From the IMG/VR virus record IMGVR_UViG_3300042691_055965, positions 165,189-229,188 of that record: a DNA stretch of 64,000 bases, one strand, 5' to 3'. This document shows, in pieces, positions 9,558 through 64,000 of this stretch. The position numbers were made by a program, and so were the translations under genes. Within the stretch, counting starts at the first letter, position 1, and every line of letters begins with the position of its first letter. The notes below the pieces were generated by a model that was not told the origin of the DNA, searched no databases, and saw only the letters and a list, made by a program, of their open reading frames with translations.

Positions 9558-9578
9558 ATTTTATCATATTTATATTAT

Positions 9579-30552: not shown

Positions 30553-31348
30553 AGAAGTAAAAAACAGTAATCCTTTAAATCAGGATGAAATCCAAATTTA
30601 TTTGAAAGACATTCGAAAGTTAAAAGTAATGACACCTGAAAGGGAAAAGATTCTTTCAGAAAGAATCACGTCAAATAATTGTACAGCAAGAGAAAGGGAA
30701 CTTATCTATAAAGAACTGTTAGAGGGTAATTTGAGATTCGTGATTACTGTTGCTAAACAATATCAAAATCAAGGAATTGATTTATCTGATTTAATTGCTG
30801 AAGGTAATTTTGGTTTAATGAAGGCTATCAAAAACTTTGATTGGAGTAAAAAGAATCGTTTTATTTCATACGCAGTTTGGTGGATTAAACAATCTATCTT
30901 ACAATCACTTAATGAAAATTCAAGAACAATCAGACTACCAGTGAACGTTGTTCAAGATATGCAAAAAGAAAAAAGACAAATCGAAAATACAAATAAAGAA
31001 TTGTCTAGTAAGTTTGCAAATCTACCTAAAATTATAGATTTGGATATGCACATCAATGAAGATGGTGATACATTGATTGATGTTATAAAAAATGAAAATG
31101 TTGAATCCCCTGATGAAATTTTTTCTACACAAGATACTTTAAAAGAAAAAATGATGTCAATTATGTCTGTTTTGGATGAAAGAGAAAGAACAATAGTTGA
31201 AGATTACTATGGTTTGTCAGGAACACCAAGAACATTAGAAGACATTGGTATGGACTTTGGTTTAACAAAAGAAAGGGTAAGGCAAATTAAAGAAAAGGCA
31301 CTTCGCAAGTTAAGAAACGAATGTTCTGAATTATTTGATTATTTATAA
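30533..31348 (+). CDS. RNA polymerase sigma-70 factor (RpoD/RpoS-like)
   Basis: YLKDI (1.2), NLRFVI..AK.Y, DLI.EGN.GL, FISYAVWWI (region 2), TLEDIG..FGLTKERVRQI (region 4). Confidence 0.95.
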   Translation: MERERIEEVKNSNPLNQDEIQIYLKDIRKLKVMTPEREKILSERITSNNCTARERELIYKELLEGNLRFVITVAKQYQNQGIDLSDLIAEGNFGLMKAIKNFDWSKKNRFISYAVWWIKQSILQSLNENSRTIRLPVNVVQDMQKEKRQIENTNKELSSKFANLPKIIDLDMHINEDGDTLIDVIKNENVESPDEIFSTQDTLKEKMMSIMSVLDERERTIVEDYYGLSGTPRTLEDIGMDFGLTKERVRQIKEKALRKLRNECSELFDYL

Positions 31349-46615: not shown

Positions 46616-47788
46616 ATGTCAATTAAAAACATCATAAAAAAAGTTTTATTAGAAGAAACTGAACAAAATCAGTGGGTTGAAGTCGATCCTCAAGATTATT
46701 TAGAATTACTAAAATACGTGGACGGAAACGGTGCTATGATTAGTAAATTACCACAATATAAAAACAAAAAAATTGCAATCAACGGGGATTTGAAAATAAA
46801 TTCAAATGATGTAAAAAACATTGATAGTATTGACTATGTTCAGGGTAATTTGGATATTAGTTATTCTGGTATTGAACATTTTGATAAAAGTAAAGTAAAA
46901 GGTAGTTTTTATAACTATAATTCAAAAATGTTTCATGAAGAAGAAAAAAAGAAATTACAAAAAAAATACGACTATTTAGAAAGTTTAAGACAAGAAGATA
47001 GTTGGGATGTTAAAAATGAAGAAGATGTTTCAGAAAGAACAGAAGCGTTATACCAACATTTAAAATCAGAAGGTCACCTTGGTGAAGATGAAGATAAATA
47101 TTTTATTTATCCTCTAAATTATGGAAGGACTAAAATGTATGAATGGTTGGGTGAAAACATCTTTCAAAGTGAATGGGAAGTTTATAGAGACGATGAGTTA
47201 GACGATGCTGCTTATGATTATGTTACGAATCTAATTGATGATGTTGGTTTAGATGCGTTCAGGGATTGGATTTATGAACAGAATTTAGATAAAGATGCTG
47301 TAAGACAATTTTATCGTGAATATTATGAAGATGTAGTTTATGATAATCCTGAAGAATATGGTGTTAAAAAACAATTATCATCAGAACAGATTAAATTCAA
47401 AGAAGTTTTTCAAAAAAAATTGAATAATTTGTATAATAAATTACAACAGGCAACAACTGAAGAAGAAAAAGAATCCTTAGAAGACAATATAAATAATACA
47501 AAAGAATTAATTCAAGATATTGATGATAATCCTGAAGGAGGTTATGATGAAGACGATATTGATGATGCGTTAACTAATTTGGCTGAAGATAGGTTGGATA
47601 ATTTTTTTGAAGATATCAAAAACTTTGGTTTCGAAAAAGACTTCATTTTAGATTATATAGATTTAAAAGGAGTAACAGAAGACGTTGTAAGACATGACGG
47701 ATATGGTGCACTATTAAATGGTTATGATGGTTCTGATGAAGAATATGAAATTAATGGAACCACTTATCATGTGATGAGACAAAATTAA
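46616..47788 (+). CDS. acidic protein with leader (candidate internal head protein)
   Basis: MSIKNIIKKVLLEE leader; TATTTATA at 46604. Confidence 0.6.
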   Translation: MSIKNIIKKVLLEETEQNQWVEVDPQDYLELLKYVDGNGAMISKLPQYKNKKIAINGDLKINSNDVKNIDSIDYVQGNLDISYSGIEHFDKSKVKGSFYNYNSKMFHEEEKKKLQKKYDYLESLRQEDSWDVKNEEDVSERTEALYQHLKSEGHLGEDEDKYFIYPLNYGRTKMYEWLGENIFQSEWEVYRDDELDDAAYDYVTNLIDDVGLDAFRDWIYEQNLDKDAVRQFYREYYEDVVYDNPEEYGVKKQLSSEQIKFKEVFQKKLNNLYNKLQQATTEEEKESLEDNINNTKELIQDIDDNPEGGYDEDDIDDALTNLAEDRLDNFFEDIKNFGFEKDFILDYIDLKGVTEDVVRHDGYGALLNGYDGSDEEYEINGTTYHVMRQN

Positions 47789-48603: not shown

Positions 48604-48795
48604 ATGGGTTTTAATAAAAGATTTTTGAATAAAAAAAGTATAATCAATAATGTTCATGATATTTTAAGTTACCTTAATGTAGATGCTTTTTACATTAACG
48701 ATGACTTTTCCTATGATGTTTATCGATTGTACATTGAAGGTAAATCAGAAGAAGAAATACTAAAATACATTAATGAAAATAAAGATGAAGATTAA
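48604..48795 (+). CDS. hypothetical protein
   Basis: 63 aa after TTGACT-17-TATTTT. Confidence 0.55.
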   Translation: MGFNKRFLNKKSIINNVHDILSYLNVDAFYINDDFSYDVYRLYIEGKSEEEILKYINENKDED

Positions 48796-50002
48796 ACTTG
48801 AATACGTGTGGCTTGACGGGTACACACCAGAACCAAACCTTAGAAGTAAAGTTAAAATAGTTAATCATGGCGATGTTAAAGACGCTATGATTACAGGTAA
48901 ATTTCCTATGTGGAATTTTGACGGGTCGTCCACCAATCAGGCGCAAACAGATAGTTCAGACTGTTTATTAAAACCAGTTCGACATTATATGATTGATACT
49001 TTGTCGACGGTATATGTTTTTTGTGAAGTTTTAAATGCAGATGGTACGCCACATCAATCAAATACACGTTCCAAATTAATTGGTGAAGAAAAAAATATTT
49101 GGTTTGGTTTTGAACAAGAATATTTTATTTTCGATAGAAAGAACAAATGTATTTTGGGGCATGACGAAAATAACTTGGAACCGCAAGGTAAATATTACTG
49201 TGGTGTTGGTGAATATGTTGCTGGTAGAAGTTTTGTAAATGAACACCTACATATGTGTTTGAATTATGGAATCGACATCACAGGAATAAATGCAGAAGTT
49301 GCACTTGGACAATGGGAATATCAAGTGTTTTCAAAAGGAAAATTAAAGGCGGGTGATGACTTATGGATGACTAGATATTTCTTACATAAAATTGCAGAAA
49401 AATACGATTACAAAATTGAGTTACATCCAAAACCTTTACAAAAAGGTGAATGGAATGGTTCAGGACTTCACACCAATTTTTCGACAGAAAAAATGAGGGA
49501 AAAAGGTGGTGAAGAATATTTCAAATCATTATTTTCAAGTTTAGAAACACGACATTGGAAACATATAGAAGATTATGGTTCTTCGAATGATTTAAGACTT
49601 ACTGGAAAATTTGAAACACAATCAATAAACAAATTCAGTTGGGGTATTTCAGATAGGGGTGCATCAATTAGGGTTCCACAAACAACAGCAAATGAATGGA
49701 AGGGATATTTGGAAGACAGACGACCTGCATCAAACGCCGACCCATATAAAATCATATATCAATTATGTGAATCAATCAAAAATGCTGAAGCAATTAATGA
49801 TATAAAACACAAAATGAATTTCAAAGGAAACTTTGATGAAATTATCAATAGATACAACGGTGTGCTTCAAACCGAAGAGTTATTGGAAGAATATCAAAAT
49901 GATGATAATTTTGAAGTGGAAAAAGAAACTATGGTAGAAAATAGAAATAATATATCAACAACAGAAATAGAATTTAATTTAAATGGAAATGACACTAAAT
50001 GA
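48773..50002 (+). CDS. glnII: glutamine synthetase, type II-like (auxiliary metabolic gene)
   Basis: LEYVWLDG, WNFDGSST, GFEQEY, GINAEV..GQWEYQ, HPKP..WNGSGLHTNFS, RLTG..ET, RGASIRVP, YLEDRRP.SN.DPY. Confidence 0.92.
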   Translation: MKIKMKIKLEYVWLDGYTPEPNLRSKVKIVNHGDVKDAMITGKFPMWNFDGSSTNQAQTDSSDCLLKPVRHYMIDTLSTVYVFCEVLNADGTPHQSNTRSKLIGEEKNIWFGFEQEYFIFDRKNKCILGHDENNLEPQGKYYCGVGEYVAGRSFVNEHLHMCLNYGIDITGINAEVALGQWEYQVFSKGKLKAGDDLWMTRYFLHKIAEKYDYKIELHPKPLQKGEWNGSGLHTNFSTEKMREKGGEEYFKSLFSSLETRHWKHIEDYGSSNDLRLTGKFETQSINKFSWGISDRGASIRVPQTTANEWKGYLEDRRPASNADPYKIIYQLCESIKNAEAINDIKHKMNFKGNFDEIINRYNGVLQTEELLEEYQNDDNFEVEKETMVENRNNISTTEIEFNLNGNDTK

Positions 50003-51237: not shown

Positions 51238-51260
51238 ATTTTTGTAACTATTTATAAGTT

Positions 51261-53507
51261 ATGAAAATTATAATCACAGAATCGCAATACAGACAAATAA
51301 TTAAAGAATCAGGTATCAGGGATATTAAAAAAATCGCAGAAAGATACCCTAAAGCAAAAATTTACTTCCATCAAGACTTAGATGGTGTAACTACCGCAAT
51401 TGCAATGAAAAACTATCTTGAACAAAACGGCATCAAAGTAGTTGATGCTGAAGTGATTCAATATGGTGATAAAGAGTTTTCAGTTAAAAAACTTGACGCA
51501 GAAGGTGATGTGATGCCAGTGTTAGTTGACTTTGCACACGGCAAACCAATGTTTGTCATTCATACCGATCACCACGATACACAAGCTGGTGTTGAATCAG
51601 GAACTGCAACAAGTTTCAAGGCATCTAGATCGAATGTTGAAACAATATCCCAAACGATATCACCAAAAGATATTTTTCCATCTGATGACTTACTTCTTAT
51701 ATCTACTGTCGATTCTGCCAATTTCCTTGCACATGATATAACTTTTGACATGGTAATGAATTATATTTTCAAAATGGATAAGGATCAATCACTTCAAAGA
51801 AATAAAATGATGATGGGATTGGTGACAAACAAATTGTTACTTGCATTTAAAAACAAACCAAAATTTTTAGAAACATTGGTTATGAAAAGTAACCCATCTT
51901 TGTTAAGTATTTTAAATAATATTAGAGATATAATGAAGGTGGAAGGTTATGCTGAACCTGAAGAACTAGAACAAAACAAACAGAATTATATTGAAAAAAT
52001 GAAAGAATTCCCTAAAGTACAGGGTAAAGTTATTGTACAGTATGGTGGGGGTTCTATGACAAAACCAGGTTCATATGATAGATATACGCCGTTTAAGAAT
52101 AATCCTGATGCTGACTTCTTGGTAATTGCTTGGCCGACAGGAATTGTTCAAGCTTCTTGTAATGCATATAAAGGTGAACGTTCACTTAAAGGTGTTAATC
52201 TTGGTGAAATGAAAGATGAGGTTCTTAAAAAGTTTGAACCGGAATTAAGTAAATTAAAAATAAGTTTTGGTACATTAAAAAGAGTTTCTGAATCAAAGGC
52301 TGGTGAGGGTTCCGTTGGTTTTACTCTCAAAGATTTTTTAGCGATATATGGAAATGCACCATCATTGAAGATTGAAGGAAATAAAGAAGATACATTAAGT
52401 GAAATAAATAAACTTTCAGATAAGTTATATTCCACTTTAACTTTCGAAGAAAAAATGAATTTGGAAAAAGCCAGTGTTAATGGTATGGATGTCGTGAAAG
52501 CAAATTCAGGTGGACATAAATGTATTACAAACATTTCTGGTTTAAGTTATCTTTACACAAACATTAGAAGGTATAAAGATGACGAATTAAAGATGATACA
52601 AAAATATGGTGGATCAAACAATTTTGTTTTGGACATCCAAAGAAAGTTGAAGTCGATGAAAAAAAATCAAGAACTTACTGAAAAGCAAAAAACTGCAGCA
52701 GTAAACCAAATCAAAAAAGAAATAGAATCAGGAAGGTATAACCCAGACATAGACAATAAGGTAACATCATATGTAGATATGATTAAGAAAATTCAACAAG
52801 AGTTTGTAAAAGTACTTGAAAGTTATATAGAAAAAGAATCCATCAACGAAAATGTCGTTGAAAAAAAAAAGTACTATATAGACGATAGTGACATTAAAGG
52901 TGCGGGAAAAGGGGTATTTGCAAAAACAAATATCAAAAAAGGTGAACGTATCGGATTGCTTCACACAATAAAAAAAATGGGTGTCAATTATGATTTTACT
53001 GAATTGGGTAAAATGCATAATCATAGTGGTAAACCCACTTGTCATAATGAAAAAGTTGGAAATAAAAGATACTTAGTCGCATCCAAAGATTTAAAAAAAG
53101 GTGAAGAACTGACAACCAATTACAGATTACAACCAGATTTGGAACAACCAAAAGAAGGTTGGGGTAATTTGAAAGAAGAAAAAGAATTTAAACCACACAT
53201 AGATGGTTACCGTACATATTCACCATTCAAAGATTTGCCATACATAATAGTCAAAGGGAATGGTATTGACTGTGATAATATTGTTCATGACTTGGTTTTA
53301 GTAGGTGACAATAAAAAGGTTAAATACTGTAAAAAAAACACTGGAGTTTATAAAATTACAGGAGCAAGTAAAATTGTAGAATTACCTGTTGATAAAACTG
53401 AAGATGTTGAAGAAATATTTAAAAGTCCTGAAAATGTGGAACTGTGGGTTAAAGAAAAAATTAAATCAGTGGATAAAAAAGGGGAAATTAGAAGAATGAT
53501 GAATTAA
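51261..53507 (+). CDS. leader + DHH-family phosphoesterase + SET domain + unknown C-terminal domain
   Basis: HQDLDG, VD, DHH, GGH; then S.IKGAGKGVFA..IKKGE, NHS, A.KDLKKGEELT.NY. Confidence 0.8.
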   Translation: MKIIITESQYRQIIKESGIRDIKKIAERYPKAKIYFHQDLDGVTTAIAMKNYLEQNGIKVVDAEVIQYGDKEFSVKKLDAEGDVMPVLVDFAHGKPMFVIHTDHHDTQAGVESGTATSFKASRSNVETISQTISPKDIFPSDDLLLISTVDSANFLAHDITFDMVMNYIFKMDKDQSLQRNKMMMGLVTNKLLLAFKNKPKFLETLVMKSNPSLLSILNNIRDIMKVEGYAEPEELEQNKQNYIEKMKEFPKVQGKVIVQYGGGSMTKPGSYDRYTPFKNNPDADFLVIAWPTGIVQASCNAYKGERSLKGVNLGEMKDEVLKKFEPELSKLKISFGTLKRVSESKAGEGSVGFTLKDFLAIYGNAPSLKIEGNKEDTLSEINKLSDKLYSTLTFEEKMNLEKASVNGMDVVKANSGGHKCITNISGLSYLYTNIRRYKDDELKMIQKYGGSNNFVLDIQRKLKSMKKNQELTEKQKTAAVNQIKKEIESGRYNPDIDNKVTSYVDMIKKIQQEFVKVLESYIEKESINENVVEKKKYYIDDSDIKGAGKGVFAKTNIKKGERIGLLHTIKKMGVNYDFTELGKMHNHSGKPTCHNEKVGNKRYLVASKDLKKGEELTTNYRLQPDLEQPKEGWGNLKEEKEFKPHIDGYRTYSPFKDLPYIIVKGNGIDCDNIVHDLVLVGDNKKVKYCKKNTGVYKITGASKIVELPVDKTEDVEEIFKSPENVELWVKEKIKSVDKKGEIRRMMN

Positions 53508-53511
53508 TCGT

Positions 53512-53540
53512 TTGACTAATTATCATTTTTGATTTATAAT
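53512..53540 (+). promoter_or_regulatory. canonical sigma-70 promoter
   Basis: TTGACT-17-TATAAT. Confidence 0.65.
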
Positions 53541-53575
53541 TACAAAAGAATTTAATCACATTAAAAAGTATTTAT

Positions 53576-53722
53576 ATGACAGAAACAACAAAAGAAGTTG
53601 AAAACGTTATTTACTCTTATGTAAATGACAGAAACGAAAAAGTATACACACCTAACTTGGAATTTGCCCACATTATGGCAAAAAAGTATGGTACTGATGA
53701 TGTCTTCGTCGAAAAAAATTAA
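53576..53722 (+). CDS. small hypothetical protein (48 aa, not in ORF track)
   Basis: MTETTKEVENVIYSYVNDRNEKVYTPNLEFAHIMAKKYGTDDVFVEKN. Confidence 0.5.
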   Translation: MTETTKEVENVIYSYVNDRNEKVYTPNLEFAHIMAKKYGTDDVFVEKN

Positions 53723-53734
53723 AAAAATTTTACA

Positions 53735-53877
53735 AGGTACTTGTCAAATCAAAATAAAAGACTTAACTTTGTAAAAGATTTGAAACTAAAGGTGATGAAA
53801 GATACTCGTTGTCGAATCGAAAAAAAAAGTTCACAAAGTACTTGACAAATAGAAATAAAAGTCGTAACTTTGTAAAA
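53735..53877 (+). promoter_or_regulatory. tandem promoters P1/P2, 101 bp apart
   Basis: TTGTCA-17-TAACTTTG (53741/53764) and TTGACA-17-TAACTTTG (53842/53865); near-identical 42-bp repeats. Confidence 0.8.
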
Positions 53878-53881
53878 CAAA

Positions 53882-53912
53882 TTCGGAAACGTCCGAAATC
53901 GTTCTTTGAAAA
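53882..53912 (+). promoter_or_regulatory. boxB-like hairpin + boxA-like antitermination element
   Basis: ttcgga-aacg-tccgaa followed by GTTCTTTGAAAA, resembling rrn leader boxA. Confidence 0.6.
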
Positions 53913-53914
53913 TT

Positions 53915-54770
53915 GAATTATCCGTTCAGGAGTAAGTAATGAAACTGATAAAGATATTCGGCGGTGTATAGTCGTTAAATAAACCACGAAAGTGGGATAA
54001 AGTGAATCAGAAGTGTAACTGATTTGCGGTTTGGGTAACCGAACTTGAGTACACAAGCGGGATACCGTATAACCTTTAGTACCGAGGGCAACGCTGTAGG
54101 GAAAGTGGTTAGACGATTGGGCGATGTGGGTCGTTCGATTGAGGTGGGAACATCAATAGGAAGAACCCGTAGGAATATTGCAAAAAATAAGATTATCCAA
54201 TTTTATTATTGCGTTTTCCAATATGATAGGATACTTAAAACCGAAAGGTATGATAACAAACAGGTGGTGCTGACATTATCCTTGATAAACTCCTACCAAG
54301 GGGTTAATCACGAAGTAGTCTTGAAATATGGAAATGGGGACATTTCACGGAGTAGTTGAGTATCGATTCGTTCAAAAGATGGGTTGGCTCGGGTGGCGGA
54401 CCACTACTTCGAAAATCCACGACACAATACTTATGATTTAAAAAGTTGAATCAAATTAACTAAGAAAGCTATAAGGAAAAGTGTCCGTCAGGTTTGGATG
54501 AAAGGTGACTACATAGTAATGAGCTGTTCATTGCACACAGAGATCCCAAGTCAATGTGTAATTATCCGAAAAACCTTTAGTCCCGCAAGGACGAACTGGG
54601 GAGGCATCCTCGGAAAGAGTCAAGTAAGATGAGAGTAATTCAAACCTCAAGGAGTGGTTTACCTAAATAACCGTCATTGAGTTTTACTTTCCAAAAGAAA
54701 GTGGATACGAAGGGAAACAATAATACTTCTAAAGAAACTCACAAAAAACTGTAATCTCAGGTTTTTATTT
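53915..54770 (+). ncRNA. large structured ncRNA (about 850 nt; GOLLD/ROOL-class candidate)
   Basis: No credible ORF, GC above background, GNRA-capped and GU-rich stems, own promoters and terminator; ends approximate. Confidence 0.7.
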
Positions 54771-54800
54771 TAGGTTAAAAATCTTATAAGGAATTTATTG

Positions 54801-54834
54801 GGGAAACAACAAATAGTTGCTTCCCTTTTTTTTT
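54801..54834 (+). terminator. intrinsic terminator of the ncRNA unit
   Basis: gggaaacaac-aaata-gttgcttccc + T9. Confidence 0.75.
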
Positions 54835-54867
54835 ACCATAGAGGTATAAATTTTGAAAAAAATTATT

Positions 54868-55161
54868 ATGGAAATGTTATATTTTTCATTCGGGTTTCTT
54901 ACCGTAATTGCTTTGATATTCATCTGTGTTTTCATCGTGGGAATTATCAAAATCTTTAGACTTAAAAAGGAAGTTGATAATCAAAAAGAAACTTTAAGAC
55001 ATGAATTTGAATGGTTTAGTCGTTCATTACACGAAAAAGAACGTGATTGGAGGGAATCGTTGGATAGTGTTCACCGAAATATAGATAGGATAACACAAGA
55101 AACAATCAATTATATTGATAAAAAAATCGAAAAAACAAATAAACAAAAAAAAGAAAAATGA
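54868..55161 (+). CDS. N-terminal TM + coiled-coil protein
   Basis: Hydrophobic N-terminus. Confidence 0.6.
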   Translation: MEMLYFSFGFLTVIALIFICVFIVGIIKIFRLKKEVDNQKETLRHEFEWFSRSLHEKERDWRESLDSVHRNIDRITQETINYIDKKIEKTNKQKKEK

Positions 55162-55165
55162 TATT

Positions 55166-55192
55166 AATCCCATCATCTGATGGGATTTTTTT
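55166..55192 (+). terminator. intrinsic terminator
   Basis: aatcccatca / tgatgggatt + T run. Confidence 0.7.
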
Positions 55193-55253
55193 GTAGATTG
55201 ATATATTTATAATTAAATAACAAATAAATAAACAAAAAAATTGAAAAAAAGTT

Positions 55254-55733
55254 ATGAAAAGAATTGTTAGATTAACAGAATCAGATCTTGCAAGAATAGT
55301 CAAAAGAGTTATTAATGAAGGTAGCGAAAAAGCGGTATTGGATGCGGGTTGGAACAGGGACGCAACAAAAATGGCAGTTGCATTCGGTACTCCCACGGCA
55401 TCTGATGGGGGTGTATCATCTGGAATCCAAGGTGTAAAAGTAGTGTTTGATGGGCTTATTTATAATGCATCCAATAAAGTAACATATGAAGGAAAAATGG
55501 CGTTCTATGGTCGTTGTGACAAAAATGGTAACCCTGGTGCTATGTCAGGTGTTGATTTGAATGATGTACTGAGTGGAGGTTCATATTATCTTTTCGGTTA
55601 TGGTGGAAAAGTTGACACCGTTGCTAGAAATTGGTGTAAAACAAAGACAGGTGTTAAACCAACAGGTTATGTAGATTCCGATTTTGTTAGTATGGCAAAA
55701 GAAGATATGGCTAAAGGACTTAAAAGATCTTAA
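55254..55733 (+). CDS. leader-bearing protein (candidate capsid cargo)
   Basis: MKRIVRLTESDLARIVKRVINE. Confidence 0.7.
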   Translation: MKRIVRLTESDLARIVKRVINEGSEKAVLDAGWNRDATKMAVAFGTPTASDGGVSSGIQGVKVVFDGLIYNASNKVTYEGKMAFYGRCDKNGNPGAMSGVDLNDVLSGGSYYLFGYGGKVDTVARNWCKTKTGVKPTGYVDSDFVSMAKEDMAKGLKRS

Positions 55734-55749
55734 AAACAAAACAAAATGA

Positions 55750-55777
55750 AAAAAATCCCCTACTTGGGGATTTTTTT
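55750..55777. terminator. bidirectional terminator
   Basis: aaaaaatcccc-tactt-ggggatttttt between convergent genes. Confidence 0.75.
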
Positions 55778-55780
55778 ATT

Positions 55781-56206
55781 TTAAAAGAATGCTACTTTAG
55801 TAGTATTACCACTTTTATATTTAAAAACCAAATCACTCTTGAATTTAGTGTTAAGACTGATTAAACAAGTGACGTTTCCAAAATCCTCAGTATTGATGTC
55901 AAATTTAACATAATCATCTGTTGTAACTAAATTATTTATTACTGAAACTTTTTTAATTCCTTCATTTTCACCGACATATCTGTGAACGAAAGTTTTATTA
56001 TCCAAATCAATTTCGTAATGATTAAATCCTTCAGTCCAAACGGTATTTTGGGAATTTGGACCATTCTGTAATAAAGTTGATAAACTAGTTTTGGAATTGG
56101 AATAGTCCATTTTGTAAAAACCAAACCCAACAAAATTGAATTGTGTTTGACAAAAAGAAATAAAAGACACGAACAAAAAAGAAAGATTCAAAAAAATAGT
56201 TTTCAT
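55781..56206 (-). CDS. secreted protein with Bacteroidota-type signal peptide
   Basis: MKTIFLNLSFLFVSFISFC-Q; minus-strand TATCTTTG at 56244-56251. Confidence 0.65.
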   Translation of the reverse strand: MKTIFLNLSFLFVSFISFCQTQFNFVGFGFYKMDYSNSKTSLSTLLQNGPNSQNTVWTEGFNHYEIDLDNKTFVHRYVGENEGIKKVSVINNLVTTDDYVKFDINTEDFGNVTCLISLNTKFKSDLVFKYKSGNTTKVAFF

Positions 56207-56332
56207 GTTTTCAGTTTTAAATGATTAATAAAATATTACAATACAAAGATATATTAATTTTTCACATAAACAAAAAAAAATTAATTTTTTATTTCATTTT
56301 GCCAAATCAAATATTTTTTCTAAATTTGTTTT

Positions 56333-56722
56333 ATGGAACACGTAAAGAAATTTGGTAAATCAATTGCAGATAAACAGGTAAAGTTTGCTAAAAAATATTT
56401 CAAAAAAACTACCTTACTTTTTGATAAAAAAATCCCATATTACAATGAATTGAATAATAGTGTTTTGAAAATCAAAAACATTAGAAAGTATAGGCACAGT
56501 TGGGGTGCTGAATATGGTTATGTTTATGAAATTGACTTGATTGTTGATTTAAGTAACAATGAATATAGCTATTCATTTACTAATGAAAAGGCGAACAGAA
56601 GAAAAAGAAGATACAATTCTTGGTATAGAGATAAGTTTCAAGACAGACTTATGGAAGAATTGAAATATTTCGAAATAACAAATATAGTAGTATCAAAAAT
56701 AGAGTACAAAAAAATTGATTAA
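56333..56722 (+). CDS. hypothetical basic protein
   Basis: TAAATTTG promoter at 56321. Confidence 0.6.
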   Translation: MEHVKKFGKSIADKQVKFAKKYFKKTTLLFDKKIPYYNELNNSVLKIKNIRKYRHSWGAEYGYVYEIDLIVDLSNNEYSYSFTNEKANRRKRRYNSWYRDKFQDRLMEELKYFEITNIVVSKIEYKKID

Positions 56723-56749
56723 TTGAAAAAAGTTTTATAATTTTACAAC

Positions 56750-57016
56750 ATGGCACAAGTAAAACAAGTAACAGTAATACATCCTAAGTTTGGGGAAATA
56801 TTGAATGAATCTTTTTTGGATGAAGTTCAGTTCAAAATCTTTCTTACAATGTTACATAGTTCATTGGAAATGAATCAGAAGTTGACATCATTCAATGGTA
56901 AAGACTTTTTGATTCATATACCAAACGACATATTAAAAGAATGTTTAATTATCGGAAACACAAAGGAGGTCTCTATGGCTGAAGTAGTATCGGCAAAATC
57001 TAAAATAGAGTCCTAA
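56750..57016 (+). CDS. hypothetical protein
   Basis: 88-aa ORF. Confidence 0.6.
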   Translation: MAQVKQVTVIHPKFGEILNESFLDEVQFKIFLTMLHSSLEMNQKLTSFNGKDFLIHIPNDILKECLIIGNTKEVSMAEVVSAKSKIES

Positions 57017-57080
57017 CAGTTTCTTTGTTTATCTTCAAAACAAAGTGGTGGAAGTTAGATTCACATTCCGTGAACGACCC

Positions 57081-57113
57081 AAAAAAGGTGAGTGTAGTTG
57101 CTCACCTTTTTTT
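57081..57113 (+). terminator. intrinsic terminator
   Basis: aaaaaaggtgag-tgtagttg-ctcacctttttt. Confidence 0.8.
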
Positions 57114-57134
57114 GTTTTAAAGGTATTTATGTAT

Positions 57135-57689
57135 ATGAAAACATTAATATCCGAAAATATGAATTACCATTTGGATAATGGTATTCCACTAACTGAAAAC
57201 GTATTCAGACCTTTTTCGCCTGAATTTTTTAACTTGATTAATGAGGCAAGAACATTATATAATAAAGGTTTAATTGATGTTGACAATGAAGAAAAGTGGA
57301 TTGTGGAATCTGACTTTGGAAAAAAAATAAGATTGTCAAATGGTAAAGTTGTAAGACTTGAAGTACCCATTTTGGAAAATAGTATTAACGAAGCAGAATA
57401 CAAAGGAAGAAAAGTTCAACTTGGTAGACCGATGCGAAACACTGGTGGAGGAAAAAAATATGTGGTTTATGTTATGAACCCATCAACAAGAAAAGTTAAG
57501 AAAATAAGTTTTGGTGATGTTCACGGTGGATTAACTGCGAAAGTTTCTAACCCCAAAGCAAGAAAGGCATTTGCTTCAAGACACAACTGTAAAGCAAAAA
57601 AAGATAGAATGACTGCTGGTTATTGGGCGTGTAGAATAAATAGGTATGGACATCTTTGGGGTGGTAAAACATACGGTGGATATTGGTGA
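57135..57689 (+). CDS. two-domain protein with basic C-terminal domain (KKISFGD..ARKAFASRHNC..AGYWAC)
   Basis: Start re-assigned downstream of the terminator and TATTTATG; internal SINE-A junction. Confidence 0.65.
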   Translation: MKTLISENMNYHLDNGIPLTENVFRPFSPEFFNLINEARTLYNKGLIDVDNEEKWIVESDFGKKIRLSNGKVVRLEVPILENSINEAEYKGRKVQLGRPMRNTGGGKKYVVYVMNPSTRKVKKISFGDVHGGLTAKVSNPKARKAFASRHNCKAKKDRMTAGYWACRINRYGHLWGGKTYGGYW

Positions 57690-58249
57690 TGAAAATTATA
57701 CTTACAGAAAAACAATTGAAAGAAATGAAAGAAGATCTTCATTCTGAAAAAAAAATAAAACTTGTCAATAAGTTTTATCAGCAAGGGTTTTCATATCAAG
57801 AAATTTCAAATTATACATCTTTACCGTTGGGGGAAGTTGTGACTCTTTTAAAGGATTACGATATGGAAATCGATTGTAAAATGGCGTATGATTTAATCAC
57901 CACCCTTTATGATAAAACAGATTTATTTCGCAAAGTAGTTCGTACAGAAAATTACACACTTGAGTTTTTTTTCAGTAAAATGGAAGGAGCAATTGAATAT
58001 AGTTACGAAACTGAAAAATATGGATTATACGGTTATGGAACACCGTATTGGAATCAAGAATGTTACCTCCCTATCGAAAATGTTGAAATTACTGATAATG
58101 TCAACGGTGAGACTGAAGACTATGAACCATATTCTAAAATAGATTTACCAAATAGATTTGATACCTTATCTGAATTACTTGATTGGTTTAATAACGATTA
58201 TTTTAAAATAATGAAAAAAACCCTTGAACAGTTTTCAAAAGATTATTAA
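57689..58249 (+). CDS. leader-bearing protein
   Basis: MKIILTEKQLKEMKE. Confidence 0.65.
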   Translation: MKIILTEKQLKEMKEDLHSEKKIKLVNKFYQQGFSYQEISNYTSLPLGEVVTLLKDYDMEIDCKMAYDLITTLYDKTDLFRKVVRTENYTLEFFFSKMEGAIEYSYETEKYGLYGYGTPYWNQECYLPIENVEITDNVNGETEDYEPYSKIDLPNRFDTLSELLDWFNNDYFKIMKKTLEQFSKDY

Positions 58250-58251
58250 CA

Positions 58252-58527
58252 ATGAAAAAACATTTACCCTTCAAACAAAAAAATATTGACGAAAAAAAAA
58301 TTAGAACGTTCGATGAAAATATCGATCCGATTGAATTGAAATGGCACAGGGATAAAGAAGATAGAAAAGTTAAAATAATTGAGTCAACAAATTGGAAATT
58401 CCAAATGGATAATGAATTACCAAAATTATTGAAAAAAGGTGATACATTAGTCATTCCAAAAGAAACATTCCATCGTGTAATCAAAGGTGATGGTAATTTG
58501 GTAATTGAGGTTGAATTTATTGATTGA
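58252..58527 (+). CDS. cupin-like protein
   Basis: WHRD..E, GD.LVIPK..FHRVIKG. Confidence 0.6.
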   Translation: MKKHLPFKQKNIDEKKIRTFDENIDPIELKWHRDKEDRKVKIIESTNWKFQMDNELPKLLKKGDTLVIPKETFHRVIKGDGNLVIEVEFID

Positions 58528-58545
58528 ATTGATATTTATAATATT

Positions 58546-59013
58546 ATGCATAGAAGTTTTATAATTAGTGAAGAAGAAAAGAAAAGAATTTTGATTCAAC
58601 ATCAAAACGCAACTAGTTCGTTATATTTGAATTTGAAAGAAGGAACAGAAACGATTTCTTTAGATGATATGCAAAAGTTCCTTAATGATACAAAAGAAGA
58701 AATACTTCAAACATTTGATTCATTGGATTCAAATAATTTGCAAACAGAAAAACTTAATTTGAAAAAAAAGATAGAATCAATTTTGAATCAAATAAAATTT
58801 GTTAATGGTGCAAAAATCGATCAACAAAAATTAAACAATATTGTAAAAGATACTGAAAGGTTAAAATTGCTTTTAGATAAATTGGATTTAAAAAACATAA
58901 AACAAATCAAAACGGAATTTCAAACCTCATTTTCATCATTATATGCATTAATTGCTGATGAAATTAAAAAGGCAAACCTCAAAGGAAAAATGATAACACA
59001 ACAAACATCATAA
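58546..59013 (+). CDS. leader-bearing helical protein
   Basis: FIISEEEKKRILIQH..YLNLKE. Confidence 0.65.
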   Translation: MHRSFIISEEEKKRILIQHQNATSSLYLNLKEGTETISLDDMQKFLNDTKEEILQTFDSLDSNNLQTEKLNLKKKIESILNQIKFVNGAKIDQQKLNNIVKDTERLKLLLDKLDLKNIKQIKTEFQTSFSSLYALIADEIKKANLKGKMITQQTS

Positions 59014-59015
59014 AA

Positions 59016-59315
59016 ATGGGAAAAATTATTATAACAGAAAAACAATTAGAAAATGTCATAAGAACAATCAAGGAAGAACATAAAGAAGGTTCATACATGG
59101 CAAAGCAACAACTTTTCACAATAGCAACACTTGCTTACAAAATGTGGGAAATGTTGGAAGATGAAGAAACTTTGGAAGATTGGATGGAAACAAAAATTGC
59201 ACAATCAGAACAATCCATTTCATCAGTTGTTAAGTCCTTTATGTATGATGAAGCAGAAGAAAGGATGAAAGGAAACAACCAAATAGATTTAGACGATTTG
59301 GTAATTGGAAAATAA
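59016..59315 (+). CDS. leader-bearing protein
   Basis: MGKIIITEKQLENVIRTIKEE; MAKQQL..LEDWMETKI. Confidence 0.65.
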   Translation: MGKIIITEKQLENVIRTIKEEHKEGSYMAKQQLFTIATLAYKMWEMLEDEETLEDWMETKIAQSEQSISSVVKSFMYDEAEERMKGNNQIDLDDLVIGK

Positions 59316-59319
59316 TTTG

Positions 59320-59346
59320 AACCCTCTTGATTGACAAGGGGGTTTT
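59320..59346 (+). terminator. intrinsic terminator overlapping a TTGACA promoter
   Basis: aaccctcttg-attga-caagggggtt + T run. Confidence 0.6.
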
Positions 59347-59364
59347 TATTTTTATATTTATTTT

Positions 59365-59544
59365 ATGTACGTAATAATCAAACACCTCAGATCGGCATCA
59401 GGAAATAAAAAAGTTCCTGTTATTTTATTAAACACAGAAAGTGAAATTTGGGAATTCAATTCTTTTGAAGAAGCAGAAAAAATGAAAGACATATTCCAAA
59501 CCAATTCAGATTCTGGATATACTTACGAAGTAAAAAAAATATAA
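59365..59544 (+). CDS. small hypothetical protein (59 aa, not in ORF track)
   Basis: MYVIIKH...EIWEFNSFEEAEKMKDIFQ. Confidence 0.55.
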   Translation: MYVIIKHLRSASGNKKVPVILLNTESEIWEFNSFEEAEKMKDIFQTNSDSGYTYEVKKI

Positions 59545-59665
59545 TTATGGAAGATTTATTTGAAATGATGCATAATGAATTCATTAATTCAGAATTATTT
59601 GAACAATTTATGTTCGAACAATCACAACATCAGTGTTAATCGAAAAGTGATATATTTATAAGGAT

Positions 59666-60604
59666 ATGTCATTATCAGATAATAAAATTATATCTTTAGG
59701 TAAAGTATTATTAAATATTGCTAAAGAAGAGTACGGACAAGATTTAATTACTCTACGTAAATTCTATACGTTATGTCAATCTGTTGAAATGGCACAAACC
59801 ATCTTGTCTTCAACTAATTTGATGTCAGACAAAGTAAAAACAATATATTCAGCATTTTTCATACAATCTAATAAAACAAAAGAGGAAATTACAAAATTAA
59901 TTAATGATTTATATTTTGTAACAATTGATTTTTACGATGACACAGGTTATATAGAAAATGAATGTTCAAGTTGCTATGGTGATGGATACCAAGACTGTTC
60001 TAATTGCGAAGGTACAGGAAAAGAATATTGTAGAACTTGTGATGGGGATGGTGGAATAGATTGTGATAGTTGCGGTGGTGGTGGTACAGAAGATTGTAGA
60101 CATTGTGACGGTAAAGGTACAGAAACAGAAGAAGACGAAGAAGGTGATGAAATAGAAGTTGAATGTGTTATTTGTGATGGTTCAGGTGTAGAAAAGTGCA
60201 GAGATTGTTCGGGGAGTGGAAATTTTGAGTGCCCAAATTGTGAAGGGAGTGGAAATGAAGAATGTGGTAGTTGTGATGGGGGTGGAAATGAAATGTGTGA
60301 CGAATGTGACGGTACAGGTGAAACAAAAAGTGAAGAAGAATTTTATAATATTACAAAACGACAATATGTTACAGTTGGAAACCTGATTGAAAAATATGAT
60401 GGTGAAATTATGTTATATGAAATATTTGAAGAAAAAGATTCAAATTTTGAAATGTTGGTAGATGAATTAAATTTATTTTCTTCGATTTATTACGACGATA
60501 TACCTGCAGATGAAAGAAATAATTCAGCTGATGTTGAAGATTATTTTGTTGAAATAGTTGATGTATTAAAATTGGAAAGAGTTAACAAGAGATTAGCTTT
60601 TTAA
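59666..60604 (+). CDS. protein with ten DnaJ-type CxxCxGxG zinc-finger repeats
   Basis: 5+5 repeats around an acidic loop; no J domain. Confidence 0.8.
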   Translation: MSLSDNKIISLGKVLLNIAKEEYGQDLITLRKFYTLCQSVEMAQTILSSTNLMSDKVKTIYSAFFIQSNKTKEEITKLINDLYFVTIDFYDDTGYIENECSSCYGDGYQDCSNCEGTGKEYCRTCDGDGGIDCDSCGGGGTEDCRHCDGKGTETEEDEEGDEIEVECVICDGSGVEKCRDCSGSGNFECPNCEGSGNEECGSCDGGGNEMCDECDGTGETKSEEEFYNITKRQYVTVGNLIEKYDGEIMLYEIFEEKDSNFEMLVDELNLFSSIYYDDIPADERNNSADVEDYFVEIVDVLKLERVNKRLAF

Positions 60605-60634
60605 TAAACCCACAATATTTATAAATAAAAATAT

Positions 60635-61243
60635 ATGAAATCGAGATTAACTGAATCAGACATAAGAAGAATAGTCAATAAAACTTTGTTTGAGATGAAC
60701 CACGATGACGATGACTTTGAAATGAATCATTCGATGGGAAGAGATGAAGAGTGGGGTGAAACCGACAAAGGAGAACAAAAACTTCAAGATTTGTTAGATG
60801 AAGCAAGAGATATATTGGAAAATGAATGTGGATTTACATTTGAAGAATTAAATCAAATGGATGAAATGGATGTTGCAACTGCATTGGAAGAAAATGCTGA
60901 AAAGTGTGAAGAAACGGAAACACAATACATTTATATGTTAGTTGATCAGATTATTGATTTGTTATATGAAGAAGGTTTCGAAGGTGACTTGGAAGAAGGT
61001 TTTGATGACGAAAGAACAAAAAGACACTACGACGATTATTCACCAAAGACATATAGAAGAATGCCAAAAAACATATTTCAACCAGGTGCTGAAGACCCTG
61101 AAGGAACAATGTTAATGAAAAGAGACGACGATGAAGAATATAACGCACATTTTGAAGACGATTTCAATTTTGATGATTTTCTTGACAAAGATGATGAAGA
61201 CAAAGAAGATTGGGATTACGATGATGAAGAATTTGAATATTAA
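60635..61243 (+). CDS. leader-bearing, very acidic protein
   Basis: MKSRLTESDIRRIVNKTLFE; D/E-rich. Confidence 0.7.
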   Translation: MKSRLTESDIRRIVNKTLFEMNHDDDDFEMNHSMGRDEEWGETDKGEQKLQDLLDEARDILENECGFTFEELNQMDEMDVATALEENAEKCEETETQYIYMLVDQIIDLLYEEGFEGDLEEGFDDERTKRHYDDYSPKTYRRMPKNIFQPGAEDPEGTMLMKRDDDEEYNAHFEDDFNFDDFLDKDDEDKEDWDYDDEEFEY

Positions 61244-61245
61244 TA

Positions 61246-61271
61246 AAAAAAGTCGGTTATACCGACTTTTT
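61246..61271. terminator. bidirectional terminator
   Basis: aaaaagtcggt-tat-accgacttttt between convergent genes. Confidence 0.75.
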
Positions 61272-61853
61272 CATTAATAAGTTGTTTAGTTTATAATATC
61301 CAATAAATACCAAACCACCAATAATACCGTAAAAGTGTCCTACTGCGGTAAAGTTTAATTCAGGAGAAGGTTTTAATGAGATTAATGTGTCAAAAATAAA
61401 GACAACAGAAAGGAATTTTAATTTATTATCATTAGAAAAGAAAAGAAAAACTGTCACTATTGTTGCAACAAAACCTGAACTACCCACCAAAGAATCATCA
61501 CCTTGTAAAACAAATAGAACGTTTATTAATATGACGTTAACGACAATACTTATTACCAACATTATCAGGTAGTTAGTTTTACTAATCATATTTTCAAGTT
61601 GAGATGAAAATATTATAAAGAAAGAAAGATTCCACAACAAATGGGTTGGTTCTTGAGCATGAAATAATGGGTAAGTTAAAACTTGATGAAGTTGAAATTT
61701 TGGAGAATCAAATGAATGTAAAGCAAGTGAATTCATCAACACCTGACTTATTGGTATTATAACAAAAATGGACAACAAGTAACAATAAACTAAAATTTTT
61801 GAAATTTTTGTAGTAATGTTATCTGACTTTCTGATAAAAATTATGTTTTTCAT
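61257..61853 (-). CDS. rhomboid-family intramembrane serine protease
   Basis: TY..FH....HL..N, GSSG catalytic Ser, H..G...G catalytic His; about six TMs. Confidence 0.8.
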   Translation of the reverse strand: MKNIIFIRKSDNITTKISKILVYCYLLSIFVIIPISQVLMNSLALHSFDSPKFQLHQVLTYPLFHAQEPTHLLWNLSFFIIFSSQLENMISKTNYLIMLVISIVVNVILINVLFVLQGDDSLVGSSGFVATIVTVFLFFSNDNKLKFLSVVFIFDTLISLKPSPELNFTAVGHFYGIIGGLVFIGYYKLNNLLMKKSV

Positions 61854-61945
61854 TTTTCTAATTTTTTTGGTTTGAAATACAAATATAGTGTTTTTTTTTA
61901 ATCAAGATATATTTATATAAAAAATAAAAAAAGAAAAAAAATATT

Positions 61946-62392
61946 ATGAAAAGAAAAAAAATAATTAGATTGTCGGAGTCACAATTGACAAAATTTATTA
62001 GACGTGTTGTGAATGAAGCTGCAGTATCAACTCAAGATGCTGCGGAAATTAAAAAAGGAACCGCAGCTGGAAATGCTTGGGTAGATTGTTCGATTGCTGC
62101 AAAAATATATAATTCACAAGGATATATTTATGATGATTTATTTATGTTACGCGACGCTCTTGCAGAGATTAAAGATAAAGCTCAATATTACCGAGTGGAA
62201 GAATGTTTGGAAAGTATAAGTGATGGTGACTATGATGATATCATCGATTACATTAATAACTTTGCTGCGGGATTGGAATTAGGTAGGGCTAATATACCTT
62301 ATCATATTCAACGATTACTAGGTAATTCAGAAATGGAAAGATTGAATACCGAAAAAACTTTTGGTGATTATTTCTATAAAGCGGGTGCGTAA
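61946..62392 (+). CDS. leader-bearing protein
   Basis: MKRKKIIRLSESQLTKFIRRVVNEA. Confidence 0.7.
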   Translation: MKRKKIIRLSESQLTKFIRRVVNEAAVSTQDAAEIKKGTAAGNAWVDCSIAAKIYNSQGYIYDDLFMLRDALAEIKDKAQYYRVEECLESISDGDYDDIIDYINNFAAGLELGRANIPYHIQRLLGNSEMERLNTEKTFGDYFYKAGA

Positions 62393-62431
62393 TAGTCCTC
62401 ACTAAATAGAAATTAATTATAATTTATTATT

Positions 62432-62460
62432 AAGACTCCCTTTTTGGAGTCTTTTTTTTT
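62432..62460 (+). terminator. intrinsic terminator
   Basis: aagactcc-cttttt-ggagtctt + T run. Confidence 0.75.
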
Positions 62461-62491
62461 GATGTCAAATTATTTTTTGTATCTTTGTGAT

Positions 62492-62989
62492 ATGAAAAAC
62501 AGACTACCATACGAAATGACATCAAAGGCAATCAAGGGATATTCTAATTCTGCAATTGCCAAAGGAGAAACAAAAGATTGTGTTGTCAGGGCATTTGCTT
62601 CTTCATTCGAAATTCCTTATGATGTTGCTCACGAATATGTTGCGACACACTTCAATCGTAAACCACGATGTGGGACTTTTGGAACATCTCTTAAGTTGGT
62701 TAAAATGGCAAATGAGGAAGTTGTTGTAAACCAAAAAAAAGTTTATTTAGTTGGATACCGATTTACCCCATCAATGTTTGGAACATTGTCATATGATGTT
62801 AAAGTCAAAGGTGAGGTTAAAAAACGAAATATGACGGTTGGAACATTTATTAAGAAAAATCCAATTGGGACATTTTTTGTTATAGTTTCAGGACACGCAT
62901 TCACAATCAAAGATGGTGTTGTTATCGGAAACTATGAAGATTCAGTTAAAATAAAAAGAGTAATGAAATGTGCATTTGAAATTAAATGA
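62492..62989 (+). CDS. hypothetical protein with DCVVRA..GH motif (possible Cys-His peptidase fold)
   Basis: Start placed after TATCTTTG at 62480. Confidence 0.55.
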   Translation: MKNRLPYEMTSKAIKGYSNSAIAKGETKDCVVRAFASSFEIPYDVAHEYVATHFNRKPRCGTFGTSLKLVKMANEEVVVNQKKVYLVGYRFTPSMFGTLSYDVKVKGEVKKRNMTVGTFIKKNPIGTFFVIVSGHAFTIKDGVVIGNYEDSVKIKRVMKCAFEIK

Positions 62990-63162
62990 TATTTCAAAAT
63001 ATGTATTGTAAAACAATCATATGAAAAATATACTACCTTGGTTCTTGTTATTGATATTATTTTTTAATACATTTTTCAGTATATACATCGATAATATTGT
63101 TGCAACACTTGGATGGACGGTTGCAAGCTTATTACAAATTAAAAATTGCATAATAAAAGAAA

Positions 63163-63447
63163 ATGAAAACATTTGACGATATAGAATTCAAAGAACATTC
63201 AGCCGGTGATGGGTATCATGGAAAAATATTCTTTGATAATGGATATGGTGTGTCAGTTGTTAGATTCAAAATCAATGGACGATACGGATCTTACACTAAT
63301 ACTGACAATCAATGGGAACTTGCGGTTCTTTTTGGTAATGAAAATGAGTGGGAAATAACTTATAATACACCCATCACAAATGATGTTATCGGTTATTTAT
63401 CTTCTGATGAGGTAACTGAAATTATGAAAAAAGTTCAAGAACTTTGA
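63163..63447 (+). CDS. hypothetical protein
   Basis: FDNGYGVSVV..WELAVL..TPITNDVIGYL. Confidence 0.65.
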   Translation: MKTFDDIEFKEHSAGDGYHGKIFFDNGYGVSVVRFKINGRYGSYTNTDNQWELAVLFGNENEWEITYNTPITNDVIGYLSSDEVTEIMKKVQEL

Positions 63448-63477
63448 AAAAACACTTCACGGGGTGTTTTTTTTTTT
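63447..63477 (+). terminator. intrinsic terminator
   Basis: aaaaaacacttc / gggtgttttttt. Confidence 0.65.
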
Positions 63478-63532
63478 GTTCAAAGGTATATTTACTTATA
63501 TAAGTAGCATAATCTGATTTAATTAAAAAAAA

Positions 63533-64000
63533 ATGAATTTAAACGAACACATCAAAAGAATGAAAACCCTGTTCAATGCTGAACATGGAATAGTAAAACC
63601 ATTAGTTTCTGAACAGGTAGCAAAATACGAACGATTACCAACATTCAAAACTTTTTCTGAATACTGTACATCTACAATTACACCAAGGGAAACTGCGGAA
63701 TATGTCGAAGAATTGAAAAATATGGGATTTAAATGTGTTGGTAGTGTCCAAATGTTAGAACCAAATTATCCTTCATCGGATCCAGAAAAACAAGCAAGAA
63801 CAATTACTTTAATGAAACCAATGCCATTAGATGGTGGTACTTTATATATAGATTTACACGAAGTAAAATTTATACATCCTGTGAGTACTTTTGGATATTA
63901 TGTAGAATATGCCAGTGGACGTGGAGAAGAAGGAAACGTAGAAGGAACAGAAGGTGTTAAGGATTTAGAAGAAAGATTGGACGCTGAATTCAGAAAATAA
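63533..64000 (+). CDS. leader-bearing protein
   Basis: MNLNEHIKRMKTLF..PLVSE. Confidence 0.6.
   Translation: MNLNEHIKRMKTLFNAEHGIVKPLVSEQVAKYERLPTFKTFSEYCTSTITPRETAEYVEELKNMGFKCVGSVQMLEPNYPSSDPEKQARTITLMKPMPLDGGTLYIDLHEVKFIHPVSTFGYYVEYASGRGEEGNVEGTEGVKDLEERLDAEFRK

Follow-up and report, generated by a model that had tools for sequence, protein, structure and literature searches.

Leader genes in a 64-kb phage window

The window analyzed here is a stretch of 64,000 nucleotides (positions 165,189 to 229,188 of IMG/VR virus record IMGVR_UViG_3300042691_055965), and its source is a huge freshwater Bacteroidetes phage with many relatives. In the metagenome assembly of sample 3300042691 (JGI), it corresponds to ∼201.3 to 265.3 kb of contig Ga0415385_0000071, which is 265,855 bp long. 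It has a G+C content of ∼30% and carries nearly all of its genes on the + strand, with tail-fiber-like and virion genes occupying the first 20 kb; replication genes, a glutamine synthetase, and a DNA methylase are also encoded. Our subject is a group of genes between 51 and 64 kb whose otherwise unrelated products open with a short leader ending in hydrophobic-x-Glu. An initial annotation had noticed these leaders and read them as one portable signal that loads effectors into the phage head. We found that they are modular N-terminal tags under protein-level selection, that all five classes of them have their boundary at hydrophobic-x-Glu, and that leader genes and an S77-family protease co-occur on related contigs.

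All seven N-terminal strings quoted in that annotation were confirmed at their coordinates in + strand open reading frames. When the window was translated in six frames, a strict motif pattern picked out six genes (51261, 55254, 57689, 59016, 60635, and 61946), matching 2 to 8 residues from the start Met in each, with no match internally or in other frames; this pattern was composed after the data had been seen, and its rough chance expectation is <0.3 across the six frames. Window genes were also tested with leader-class profiles built without window sequences. The leaders listed in that annotation, first taken to be of a single type, came apart under these tests into at least three classes: 55254, 61946, and 60635 belong to class 1, 58546 belongs to class 2, and 63533, one of the looser versions, belongs to class 3; 51261, 57689, and 59016 carry only half of a motif.

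The canonical class 1 leader is 22 residues long, with the consensus MK(K/R)(I/V)(I/V)RLTESDLxRIVKRVIxE. It opens the gene at 55254 to 55733 (+), where it spans 55254 to 55319 (MKRIVRLTESDLARIVKRVINE; profile score 55.7 bits, E = 2e-15) and precedes a 137-residue beta-rich cargo. In the AlphaFold2 model of this protein, residues 9 to 23 form a helix, and the confidence score (predicted local distance difference test) drops below 50 at residues 20 to 24 and is ∼90 in the body; the prediction thus sets the leader apart as a helix of its own, joined to the body with low confidence at the putative cut site. A fold search of the cargo against the PDB gave no significant match, and within the cargo family the bodies are ∼35% identical and the leader is nearly invariant. 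Class 1 variants, recovered by iterative search of 2,679 N-termini, open the gene at 61946 to 62392 (+; leader 61946 to 62017, MKRKKIIRLSESQLTKFIRRVVNE; E = 2.3e-10) and, ahead of a very acidic cargo, the gene at 60635 to 61243 (+; leader 60635 to 60694, MKSRLTESDIRRIVNKTLFE; E = 5.1e-7). The canonical leader is found on the homolog of the 61946 protein in related locus L071, on homologs of the 60635 cargo in L094 and L086, and on protein P0087.

Two other classes are present in the window. The gene at 58546 to 59013 (+) joins a class 2 leader (MHRSFIISEEEKKRILIQHQNATSSLYLNLKE; class 2 profile, E = 1e-11) to a helical cargo, and the gene at 63533 to 64000 (+) has a class 3 leader (MNLNEHIKRMKTLFNAEHGIVKPLVSE; class 3 profile, E = 1.8e-4) and reaches its full 155 residues in L210, a sister contig that extends 9 kb downstream past the window end.

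What the products of 51261, 57689, and 59016 have in common is the first half of class 1, h-I-[IL]-T-E-x-Q. At 59016 to 59315 (+; MGKIIITEKQLENVIRTIKE) the profile score of 3.8 bits is not significant; orthologs in L094, L009, and L082 retain h-I-[IL]-[ST]-E-x-Q-L and finish in L-K-E. The N-terminus encoded at 57689 to 58249 (+; MKIILTEKQLKEMKE) matches the strict pattern in its first half, lies below profile significance, and had itself as its sole match among 5.8 billion proteins; homologs begin MNYLITESQ and MKYLISESQ. The gene at 51261 to 53507 (+) encodes a 748-residue SET-domain protein (E = 7.9e-9) whose leader-like N-terminus (MKIIITESQYRQIIKE, then SGIRDIKKIAE) is likewise below profile significance. 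Its orthologs open with a short MKKLIKE followed by SGIRD, and a PDB sequence search found no relative of it.

Looser versions of the leader had been listed at five further positions, and 63533 held up as class 3. Profile searches gave no leader support for the N-termini at 41458 and 57135. The genes at 35889 to 36986 (+; MDREILNIVNKVLSE, like the second half of class 1) and 46616 to 47788 (+; MSIKNIIKKVLLE) have candidate short leaders that gave no significant profile match, each with the promoter-like element TATTTATA 4 nucleotides upstream; they share the N-terminus h-x-x-I-[VI]-x-K-V-L-x-E, and orthologs of 46616 in L085 and L099 begin MSLKKFFKNYILE. All told, ∼8 of the ∼25 genes in 51 to 64 kb bear a leader, and among them lie other genes, one of them for a rhomboid protease, and a GOLLD RNA, so that to call the region an injected-effector island was an overstatement.

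Portable leaders in five classes

The class 1 leader is far more widespread than first noted. Residues 1 to 40 of the 55254 protein, searched against 5.8 billion proteins, gave 874 matches; 116 of the top 120 have the motif at the same N-terminal offset and are unrelated immediately past the Glu, and these 116 share the consensus MK(K/R)(I/V)(I/V)RLTESDLxRIV(K/R)RVIxE. When a profile was built from 42 leaders and run against 1.84 billion cluster representatives, 7,667 of them matched at E ≤ 1e-3 and 793 at E ≤ 1e-10. As a back-translated DNA pattern the leader was found at ≥120 places in IMG/VR, on contigs of up to 321 kb, and 185,579 genomes of bacteria and archaea gave a single hit, on a 3.3-kb contig from a Bacteroidetes metagenome-assembled genome. 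No true match came from cultured phages: the sole tblastn hit of the leader, 54% in a Pseudomonas phage, is a chance one. The leader and most of its cargos are absent from Pfam and PHROGs, and a literature search for the leader strings found none.

In related phage loci, the class 1 leader opens 246 of 2,679 genes. A profile scan of 121 such loci (1.09 Mb) and the window gave 235 matches, up to 8 of them within ≤14 kb of a single locus; the start Met coincides with model position 1 in 204, and 232 end in hydrophobic-x-E. Across 176 unique leaders, amino acid entropy is ≤1.3 bits at positions 1 to 20 and 22, with positions 13 and 21 free, and leaps to 3 to 4 bits from position 23 on. Of the 176, 174 have I, L, or V at position 20 and every one has Glu22, a residue outside the retrieval pattern, which ended at position 19. 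Leu7 and Arg18 are each encoded by five codons and Ser10 by both TCN and AGT; since the amino acids are fixed while synonymous codons vary freely, selection acts on the peptide. The leader helix is amphipathic (hydrophobic moment 0.67, matched by 1.6% of shuffles) and has a net charge of +3.

Proteins P0121 to P0136, P0185, and P0194 of our library contain two or three leader copies each, including a variant, RLTESDLHxIVKES, in P0194. In proteins built as leader-cargo-leader-cargo, both cargos also occur as separate leader proteins (P0123, for example), and one such fusion was verified in DNA. The contigs retrieved for two proteins with several leaders are only 1 kb long. Internal copies of this kind would suit endoproteolytic release. 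At L054 9865 to 11316 (−), a repeat-containing domain, endonuclease-like by eye, lies in frame upstream of a leader lacking its first residues, and this fusion may have arisen by insertion of a mobile endonuclease into such a gene.

Further classes emerged when the first 32 residues of the 2,679 genes were clustered blindly, without any motif, against the bodies of the same genes. Class 1 and class 2 came out as a group of 432 genes across 237 body families, three more classes were returned, and ordinary signal peptides from the same loci, serving as a control, formed a separate cluster. The consensus sequences are MK.FII(S/T)EEEK.RILGMHQSATSRQYLxE for class 2, M.NIE.YK.RFY.LMEST.GDVKPLIxE for class 3, MNRSYSKIRHIQESNLKLEKRLLNE for class 4, and MK.NINEELN.MKYLLGYKKGVVISE for class 5. 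The motifs of classes 2 to 5 are confined to N-termini (for class 2, 16 N-terminal and zero internal occurrences in 598,000 residues), and each of the five classes is carried by unrelated bodies, as was also seen for class 2 in a large protein database. In blind alignments of classes 2 to 5, conservation ends exactly at hydrophobic-x-Glu, usually with Gln next. This terminal hydrophobic-x-Glu is the single feature common to all five classes.

The portability claimed for the leader is borne out by its cargo: BLAST sorted 229 bodies behind leaders (median, 111 residues) into 140 clusters. A Pfam domain is on record for 1 of the 120 top leader proteins, and a Pfam scan of the window leader proteins other than 51261 returned no family. 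The bodies in the window were rightly described as unrelated, and the SET domain of 51261 is well supported, whereas its DHH match (E = 3e-4, under the Pfam cut-off) and the leucine-rich-repeat match of 41458 are weak. Among 20 larger cargo proteins, five have a peptidoglycan-binding domain, behind class 1 and class 3 leaders, and one of these also bears MORN repeats. None has a signal peptide, and the same phages put ordinary signal peptides on other proteins. A class 2 leader precedes a segment that we judged peptidoglycan-binding-like by eye from its motif, without Pfam confirmation. PHROG matches to "endolysin" span only the peptidoglycan-binding domain, and we rejected that identity for the cargo.

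Head genes of relatives and the surroundings of leader genes

Several leader-gene loci encode homologs of T4 TerL, sheath, tube, portal, gp21, and gp23, with gp21 homologs found by single-pass phmmer at E = 5e-19 to 5e-17. The protease of a related phage matches Pfam Peptidase_S77 (E = 7e-23) and is 34% identical to T4 gp21 over 146 residues of the catalytic core; L-I-E lies ∼43 residues upstream of its NRN.R.YP, and an L-I-E is similarly spaced in T4 gp21. One such protease gene is at L062 2639 to 3364. Contigs 3300021600_000017 and 3300031963_008590 carry a leader gene and the S77 protease together. The comparison with T4 gp21 in the initial annotation therefore gains weight, inasmuch as the only universal feature of the leaders is the cleavage logo of T4 gp21 and relatives with leader genes encode a protease of that family.

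The head module is ordered portal, 240-residue gene, reverse-strand gene, 155-residue gene, protease, 71-residue gene, acidic scaffold-like gene, and capsid gene. The reverse-strand gene has a weak match to ribosomal S21 (E = 1.2e-4, below the cut-off). Freshwater Bacteroidetes "bS21 phages" have genomes of up to 331 kb (PMC9723584), and the head-module gene order fits theirs. The scaffold-like protein has an isoelectric point (pI) of 4.3 and is 28% Asp plus Glu. All 34 distinct full-length N-termini of the capsid protein run ...AS[FYH]LINE|A and then into a variable stretch, placing LINE|A where T4 gp23 has FLTE|AE. A leader gene encoding a small acidic protein sits between the protease and scaffold genes in L034 and L062, and the gene next after the protease gene in L042 encodes a leader protein of 381 residues. 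The window's contig is not among the 80 best protease loci.

Most leader genes reside away from the head module, in a variable region with transfer RNAs (tRNAs), transfer-messenger RNA (tmRNA), and GOLLD RNA. The window has a full-length GOLLD RNA at 54348 to 54763 (+; Rfam RF02032, scoring 313.7 bits where the cut-off is 150), in a stretch poor in open reading frames with leader genes on both sides. GOLLD RNA was found in 12 of 120 leader-selected loci (among them L009, L067, L094, L020, L023, and L116) versus 0 of 80 protease-selected loci, and in L116, L023, and L001 the gene immediately downstream of it is a leader gene. It frequently adjoins tRNA arrays and tmRNA. Arrays of tRNA genes are interleaved with leader genes (∼22 genes in L013 and ∼14 in L094), and tmRNA is present in L067, L023, and L116. 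Downstream of the window, the sister contig L210 continues with five tRNA genes (Met, Glu, Arg, Trp, and Ile; L210 9890 to 10984), a holin, and further leader genes, two of which, at L210 12159 and 15620, are of class 4.

Other genes stand among the leader genes of the window. A rhomboid-family intramembrane protease is encoded by the other strand at 61257 to 61853 (−; Pfam PF01694, E = 2e-12), and its homolog adjoins a leader gene in L071. The gene at 59666 to 60604 (+) has the promoter motif and no leader; its 312-residue product has many CxxC pairs and a weak likeness to the DnaJ zinc finger (E = 8.5e-4).

The promoter-like element TATTTATA occurs 30 times in the window, compared to an expected 12.2 ± 3.9, and none of 100 shuffles reached 30. 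Of the seven leader genes, five (51261, 55254, 58546, 60635, and 61946) have it 4 to 42 nucleotides upstream, at 55204 to 55211 (+) and, further, at 51249, 58533, 60616, and 61910. In related loci, ATATTTAT(A) peaks 14 to 22 nucleotides before the ATG of leader genes, often preceded by a terminator-like hairpin. As the initial annotation had stated, the element is shared with structural-type genes (2683, 9579, 9892, 14029, and 18184), but it does not single them out: the motif precedes 25% of other genes and 59% of leader genes in related loci, as well as 6 of 6 protease genes, and is found within 45 nucleotides upstream of 0 of 6 capsid genes. With ∼25% of all related-locus genes preceded by it, we rejected TATTTATA as a marker of late or structural genes; judging by its distribution, it looks like a general phage promoter enriched at leader genes. 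A sigma-70-family factor encoded at 30533 to 31348 (+; regions 2 and 4, E about 1e-16) could be the reader of this phage-specific motif. Across the window (2662 to 61917), the element often ends just 4 to 13 nucleotides before the start codon (elements at 9567, 18172, 35877, 46604, and 51249), which would leave many transcripts with next to no 5′ leader, a point of note in phages with a ribosomal protein bS21 of their own.

Several further features of the window were noted. A 901-residue protein of the virion region (6563 to 9268, +) contains SprB repeats (E = 1e-17), which offer a clue to the host because they are typical of Bacteroidetes gliding-motility adhesins. The glutamine synthetase (48773 to 50002, +; 409 residues, with Gln-synt_N and Gln-synt_C on record) is 66 to 76% identical to its counterparts in related loci. 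A near-identity DNA search of cultured phages with window positions 51 to 64 kb gave zero matches, and the top protein matches of the SbcC-like gene are from uncultured huge phages. The window shares many genes with loci L004 and L071, both of which carry a T4-like terminase.

Proposed prohead loading and its alternatives

Given these features, the explanation that we favor, and regard as moderately probable, is that the leaders are portable propeptides of T4-like head assembly, which would load proteins into the prohead and then be cut off. The basic amphipathic helix would dock the protein on the prohead interior, probably on the very acidic scaffold or core, and a gp21-type prohead protease (Peptidase_S77) would cut after the invariant terminal Glu, possibly with a second cut after the internal L-T-E in class 1. 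Mature cargo would then remain in the head with the DNA, to be delivered to the next cell or to serve inside the head. With at least five interchangeable tag classes and fast turnover of cargo genes, each phage would carry its own set of delivered proteins.

The closest known system is that of T4. Capsid targeting sequences on T4 internal proteins were reportedly described by Mullaney and Black in 1996. They are present on IPI to IPIII and Alt and are removed by gp21 (PMC9026906, PMC3012670), which cuts after L/I-X-E and takes off 10 to 19 residues from internal proteins (PMC9026906). The leaders resemble them in being short N-terminal tags on unrelated, fast-evolving proteins, in ending in hydrophobic-x-Glu, which reproduces the gp21 logo L/I-x-E, and in the presence of an S77 protease and T4-like portal, capsid protein, and terminase in leader-bearing related contigs. 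The N-terminus of Alt, MELITELFDE, the only one compared, resembles the first half of the leader (h-I-T-E; compare MKIIITE) and nothing beyond. The two systems also differ. The leaders have 20 to 30 residues rather than ∼10, have no demonstrable sequence homology with the T4 signal, are near-invariant across thousands of cargo families, and come in at least five classes within one phage lineage, with up to eight genes per locus of ≤14 kb and with internal copies in fused proteins.

Several observations weigh against prohead loading. Among 80 protease-selected head-module loci (830 kb) there were 6 leader matches, none of them between the protease and capsid genes, and on this basis we rejected the idea that the canonical tag sits on obligatory core or scaffold proteins. 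No S77 protease was found in the window's own phage, which was covered by the window, by its contig up to position 265,855, and by the 9 kb further downstream on the sister contig; those 9 kb have no head genes. Cargo charge is the same as that of other phage genes (median pI, 5.8) and not preferentially basic, whereas T4 internal proteins are basic. The promoter-like motif, standing before a quarter of all genes, does not establish late timing. Many substitutions are tolerated in the T4 signal (PMC9026906), and the much stronger conservation of the tag suggests a more specific receptor. Finally, the residue past the putative cut is usually Gln, whereas the one gp21 bond specified in a T4 review is glutamyl-alanyl (PMC9026906).

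Other systems share parts of this arrangement. In the giant phages phiKZ, 201phi2-1, and SPN3US, whose ejection and inner-body proteins have propeptides, the Glu of a three-residue motif, A/S/G-x-E, marks the cut in many head proteins (PMC5694885), and extra cuts within the propeptides recall the pair of L-T-E and I-x-E seen here. However, the leaders have I, L, or V rather than A/S/G two residues before Glu, and those phages use a distinct, diverged gp21 relative and have long, protein-specific propeptides with no shared portable tag. In phage P1, an N-terminal segment of ∼30 residues of DarB suffices to send a foreign protein into the capsid (PMC9024508). That segment is known from one protein only, with no report of a wider family or of a protease site at its end. 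Encapsulin cargo-loading peptides and the encapsulation peptides of bacterial microcompartments likewise use a short amphipathic helix and a flexible linker to bring diverse cargo into a shell, which in encapsulins has the capsid-protein fold. Unlike the leaders under prohead loading, these tags stay on the cargo; they are also much less conserved, and those of encapsulins are usually C-terminal.

The prohead protease might instead cut propeptides whose cargo is never injected, being either auxiliary core or filler destined for degradation or proteins that cleavage inside the prohead would activate. In T4, most of the core proteins gp22 and gp67 exits the head after cleavage at L/I-x-E (PMC9026906), many cargos here are small, acidic, and without a family (119 of 120 lack a Pfam domain), and the small acidic leader protein encoded in the head modules of L034 and L062 would fit such a role. 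We nevertheless think this unlikely, given that cargo turnover and diversity suit an arms race better than a structural role and that SET, peptidoglycan-binding, and MORN domains suggest activities in the host.

It is also improbable that the leader is retained and acts as a docking or oligomerization helix for a common partner outside the prohead, whether a membrane, a hub protein of the host, or an assembly made by the phage, for which the neighboring GOLLD RNA is a candidate. Near-invariance does imply a single specific partner, internal leader copies exist, and GOLLD RNA is confined to the leader-selected side of the two locus sets. Yet a retained helix leaves unexplained why hydrophobic-x-Glu, its middle position free, should close five unrelated classes and why conservation should stop exactly at the Glu, and the GOLLD association is mild, as both features may merely share the variable tRNA region.

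Recurrent peptidoglycan-binding domains in the cargo would be in keeping with an export signal, for example to the periplasm, analogous to a double-glycine leader cut by a peptidase-transporter, and L-T-E-S-D-L is superficially like the L-S-x-x-E-L of double-glycine leaders. Export is very unlikely all the same: the leaders lack Gly-Gly and end in I-x-E, they are charged and amphipathic with no hydrophobic core of ≥10 residues as in Sec or lipoprotein signals, the cargo includes cytoplasmic-type enzymes (SET and DHH), the same loci give exported proteins ordinary signal peptides, and no dedicated transporter was seen beside leader genes.

GOLLD RNA itself reportedly forms, as structural work is said to suggest, large multimeric particles. 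That the tags address GOLLD RNA rather than the capsid, with basic amphipathic leaders loading or decorating such a particle, seems to us highly improbable; if true, it would give GOLLD its first functional partner. Conservation at the nucleic acid level, as a translation-start or recombination element common to gene cassettes, would suit leader genes that are self-contained cassettes (terminator, promoter-like box, and A-rich spacer) in phages that encode their own bS21 (PMC9723584), but is ruled out for practical purposes by the codon analysis above.

If prohead loading is correct, approximately 7,700 unannotated protein clusters become candidates for delivery in the virions of huge Bacteroidetes phages, a large pool to mine for anti-defense and host-takeover functions. 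The terminal hydrophobic-x-Glu-Gln predicts that metaproteomic N-termini will begin directly after the Glu and supplies a sequence rule for spotting such cargo in metagenomes, and the tags could become a means of packing proteins of choice into phages that infect environmental Bacteroidetes. For this group of phages, it would mean that the small internal-protein system of T4 has been expanded in the wild into multiclass, cassette-based loading, with dozens of cargo genes per genome.

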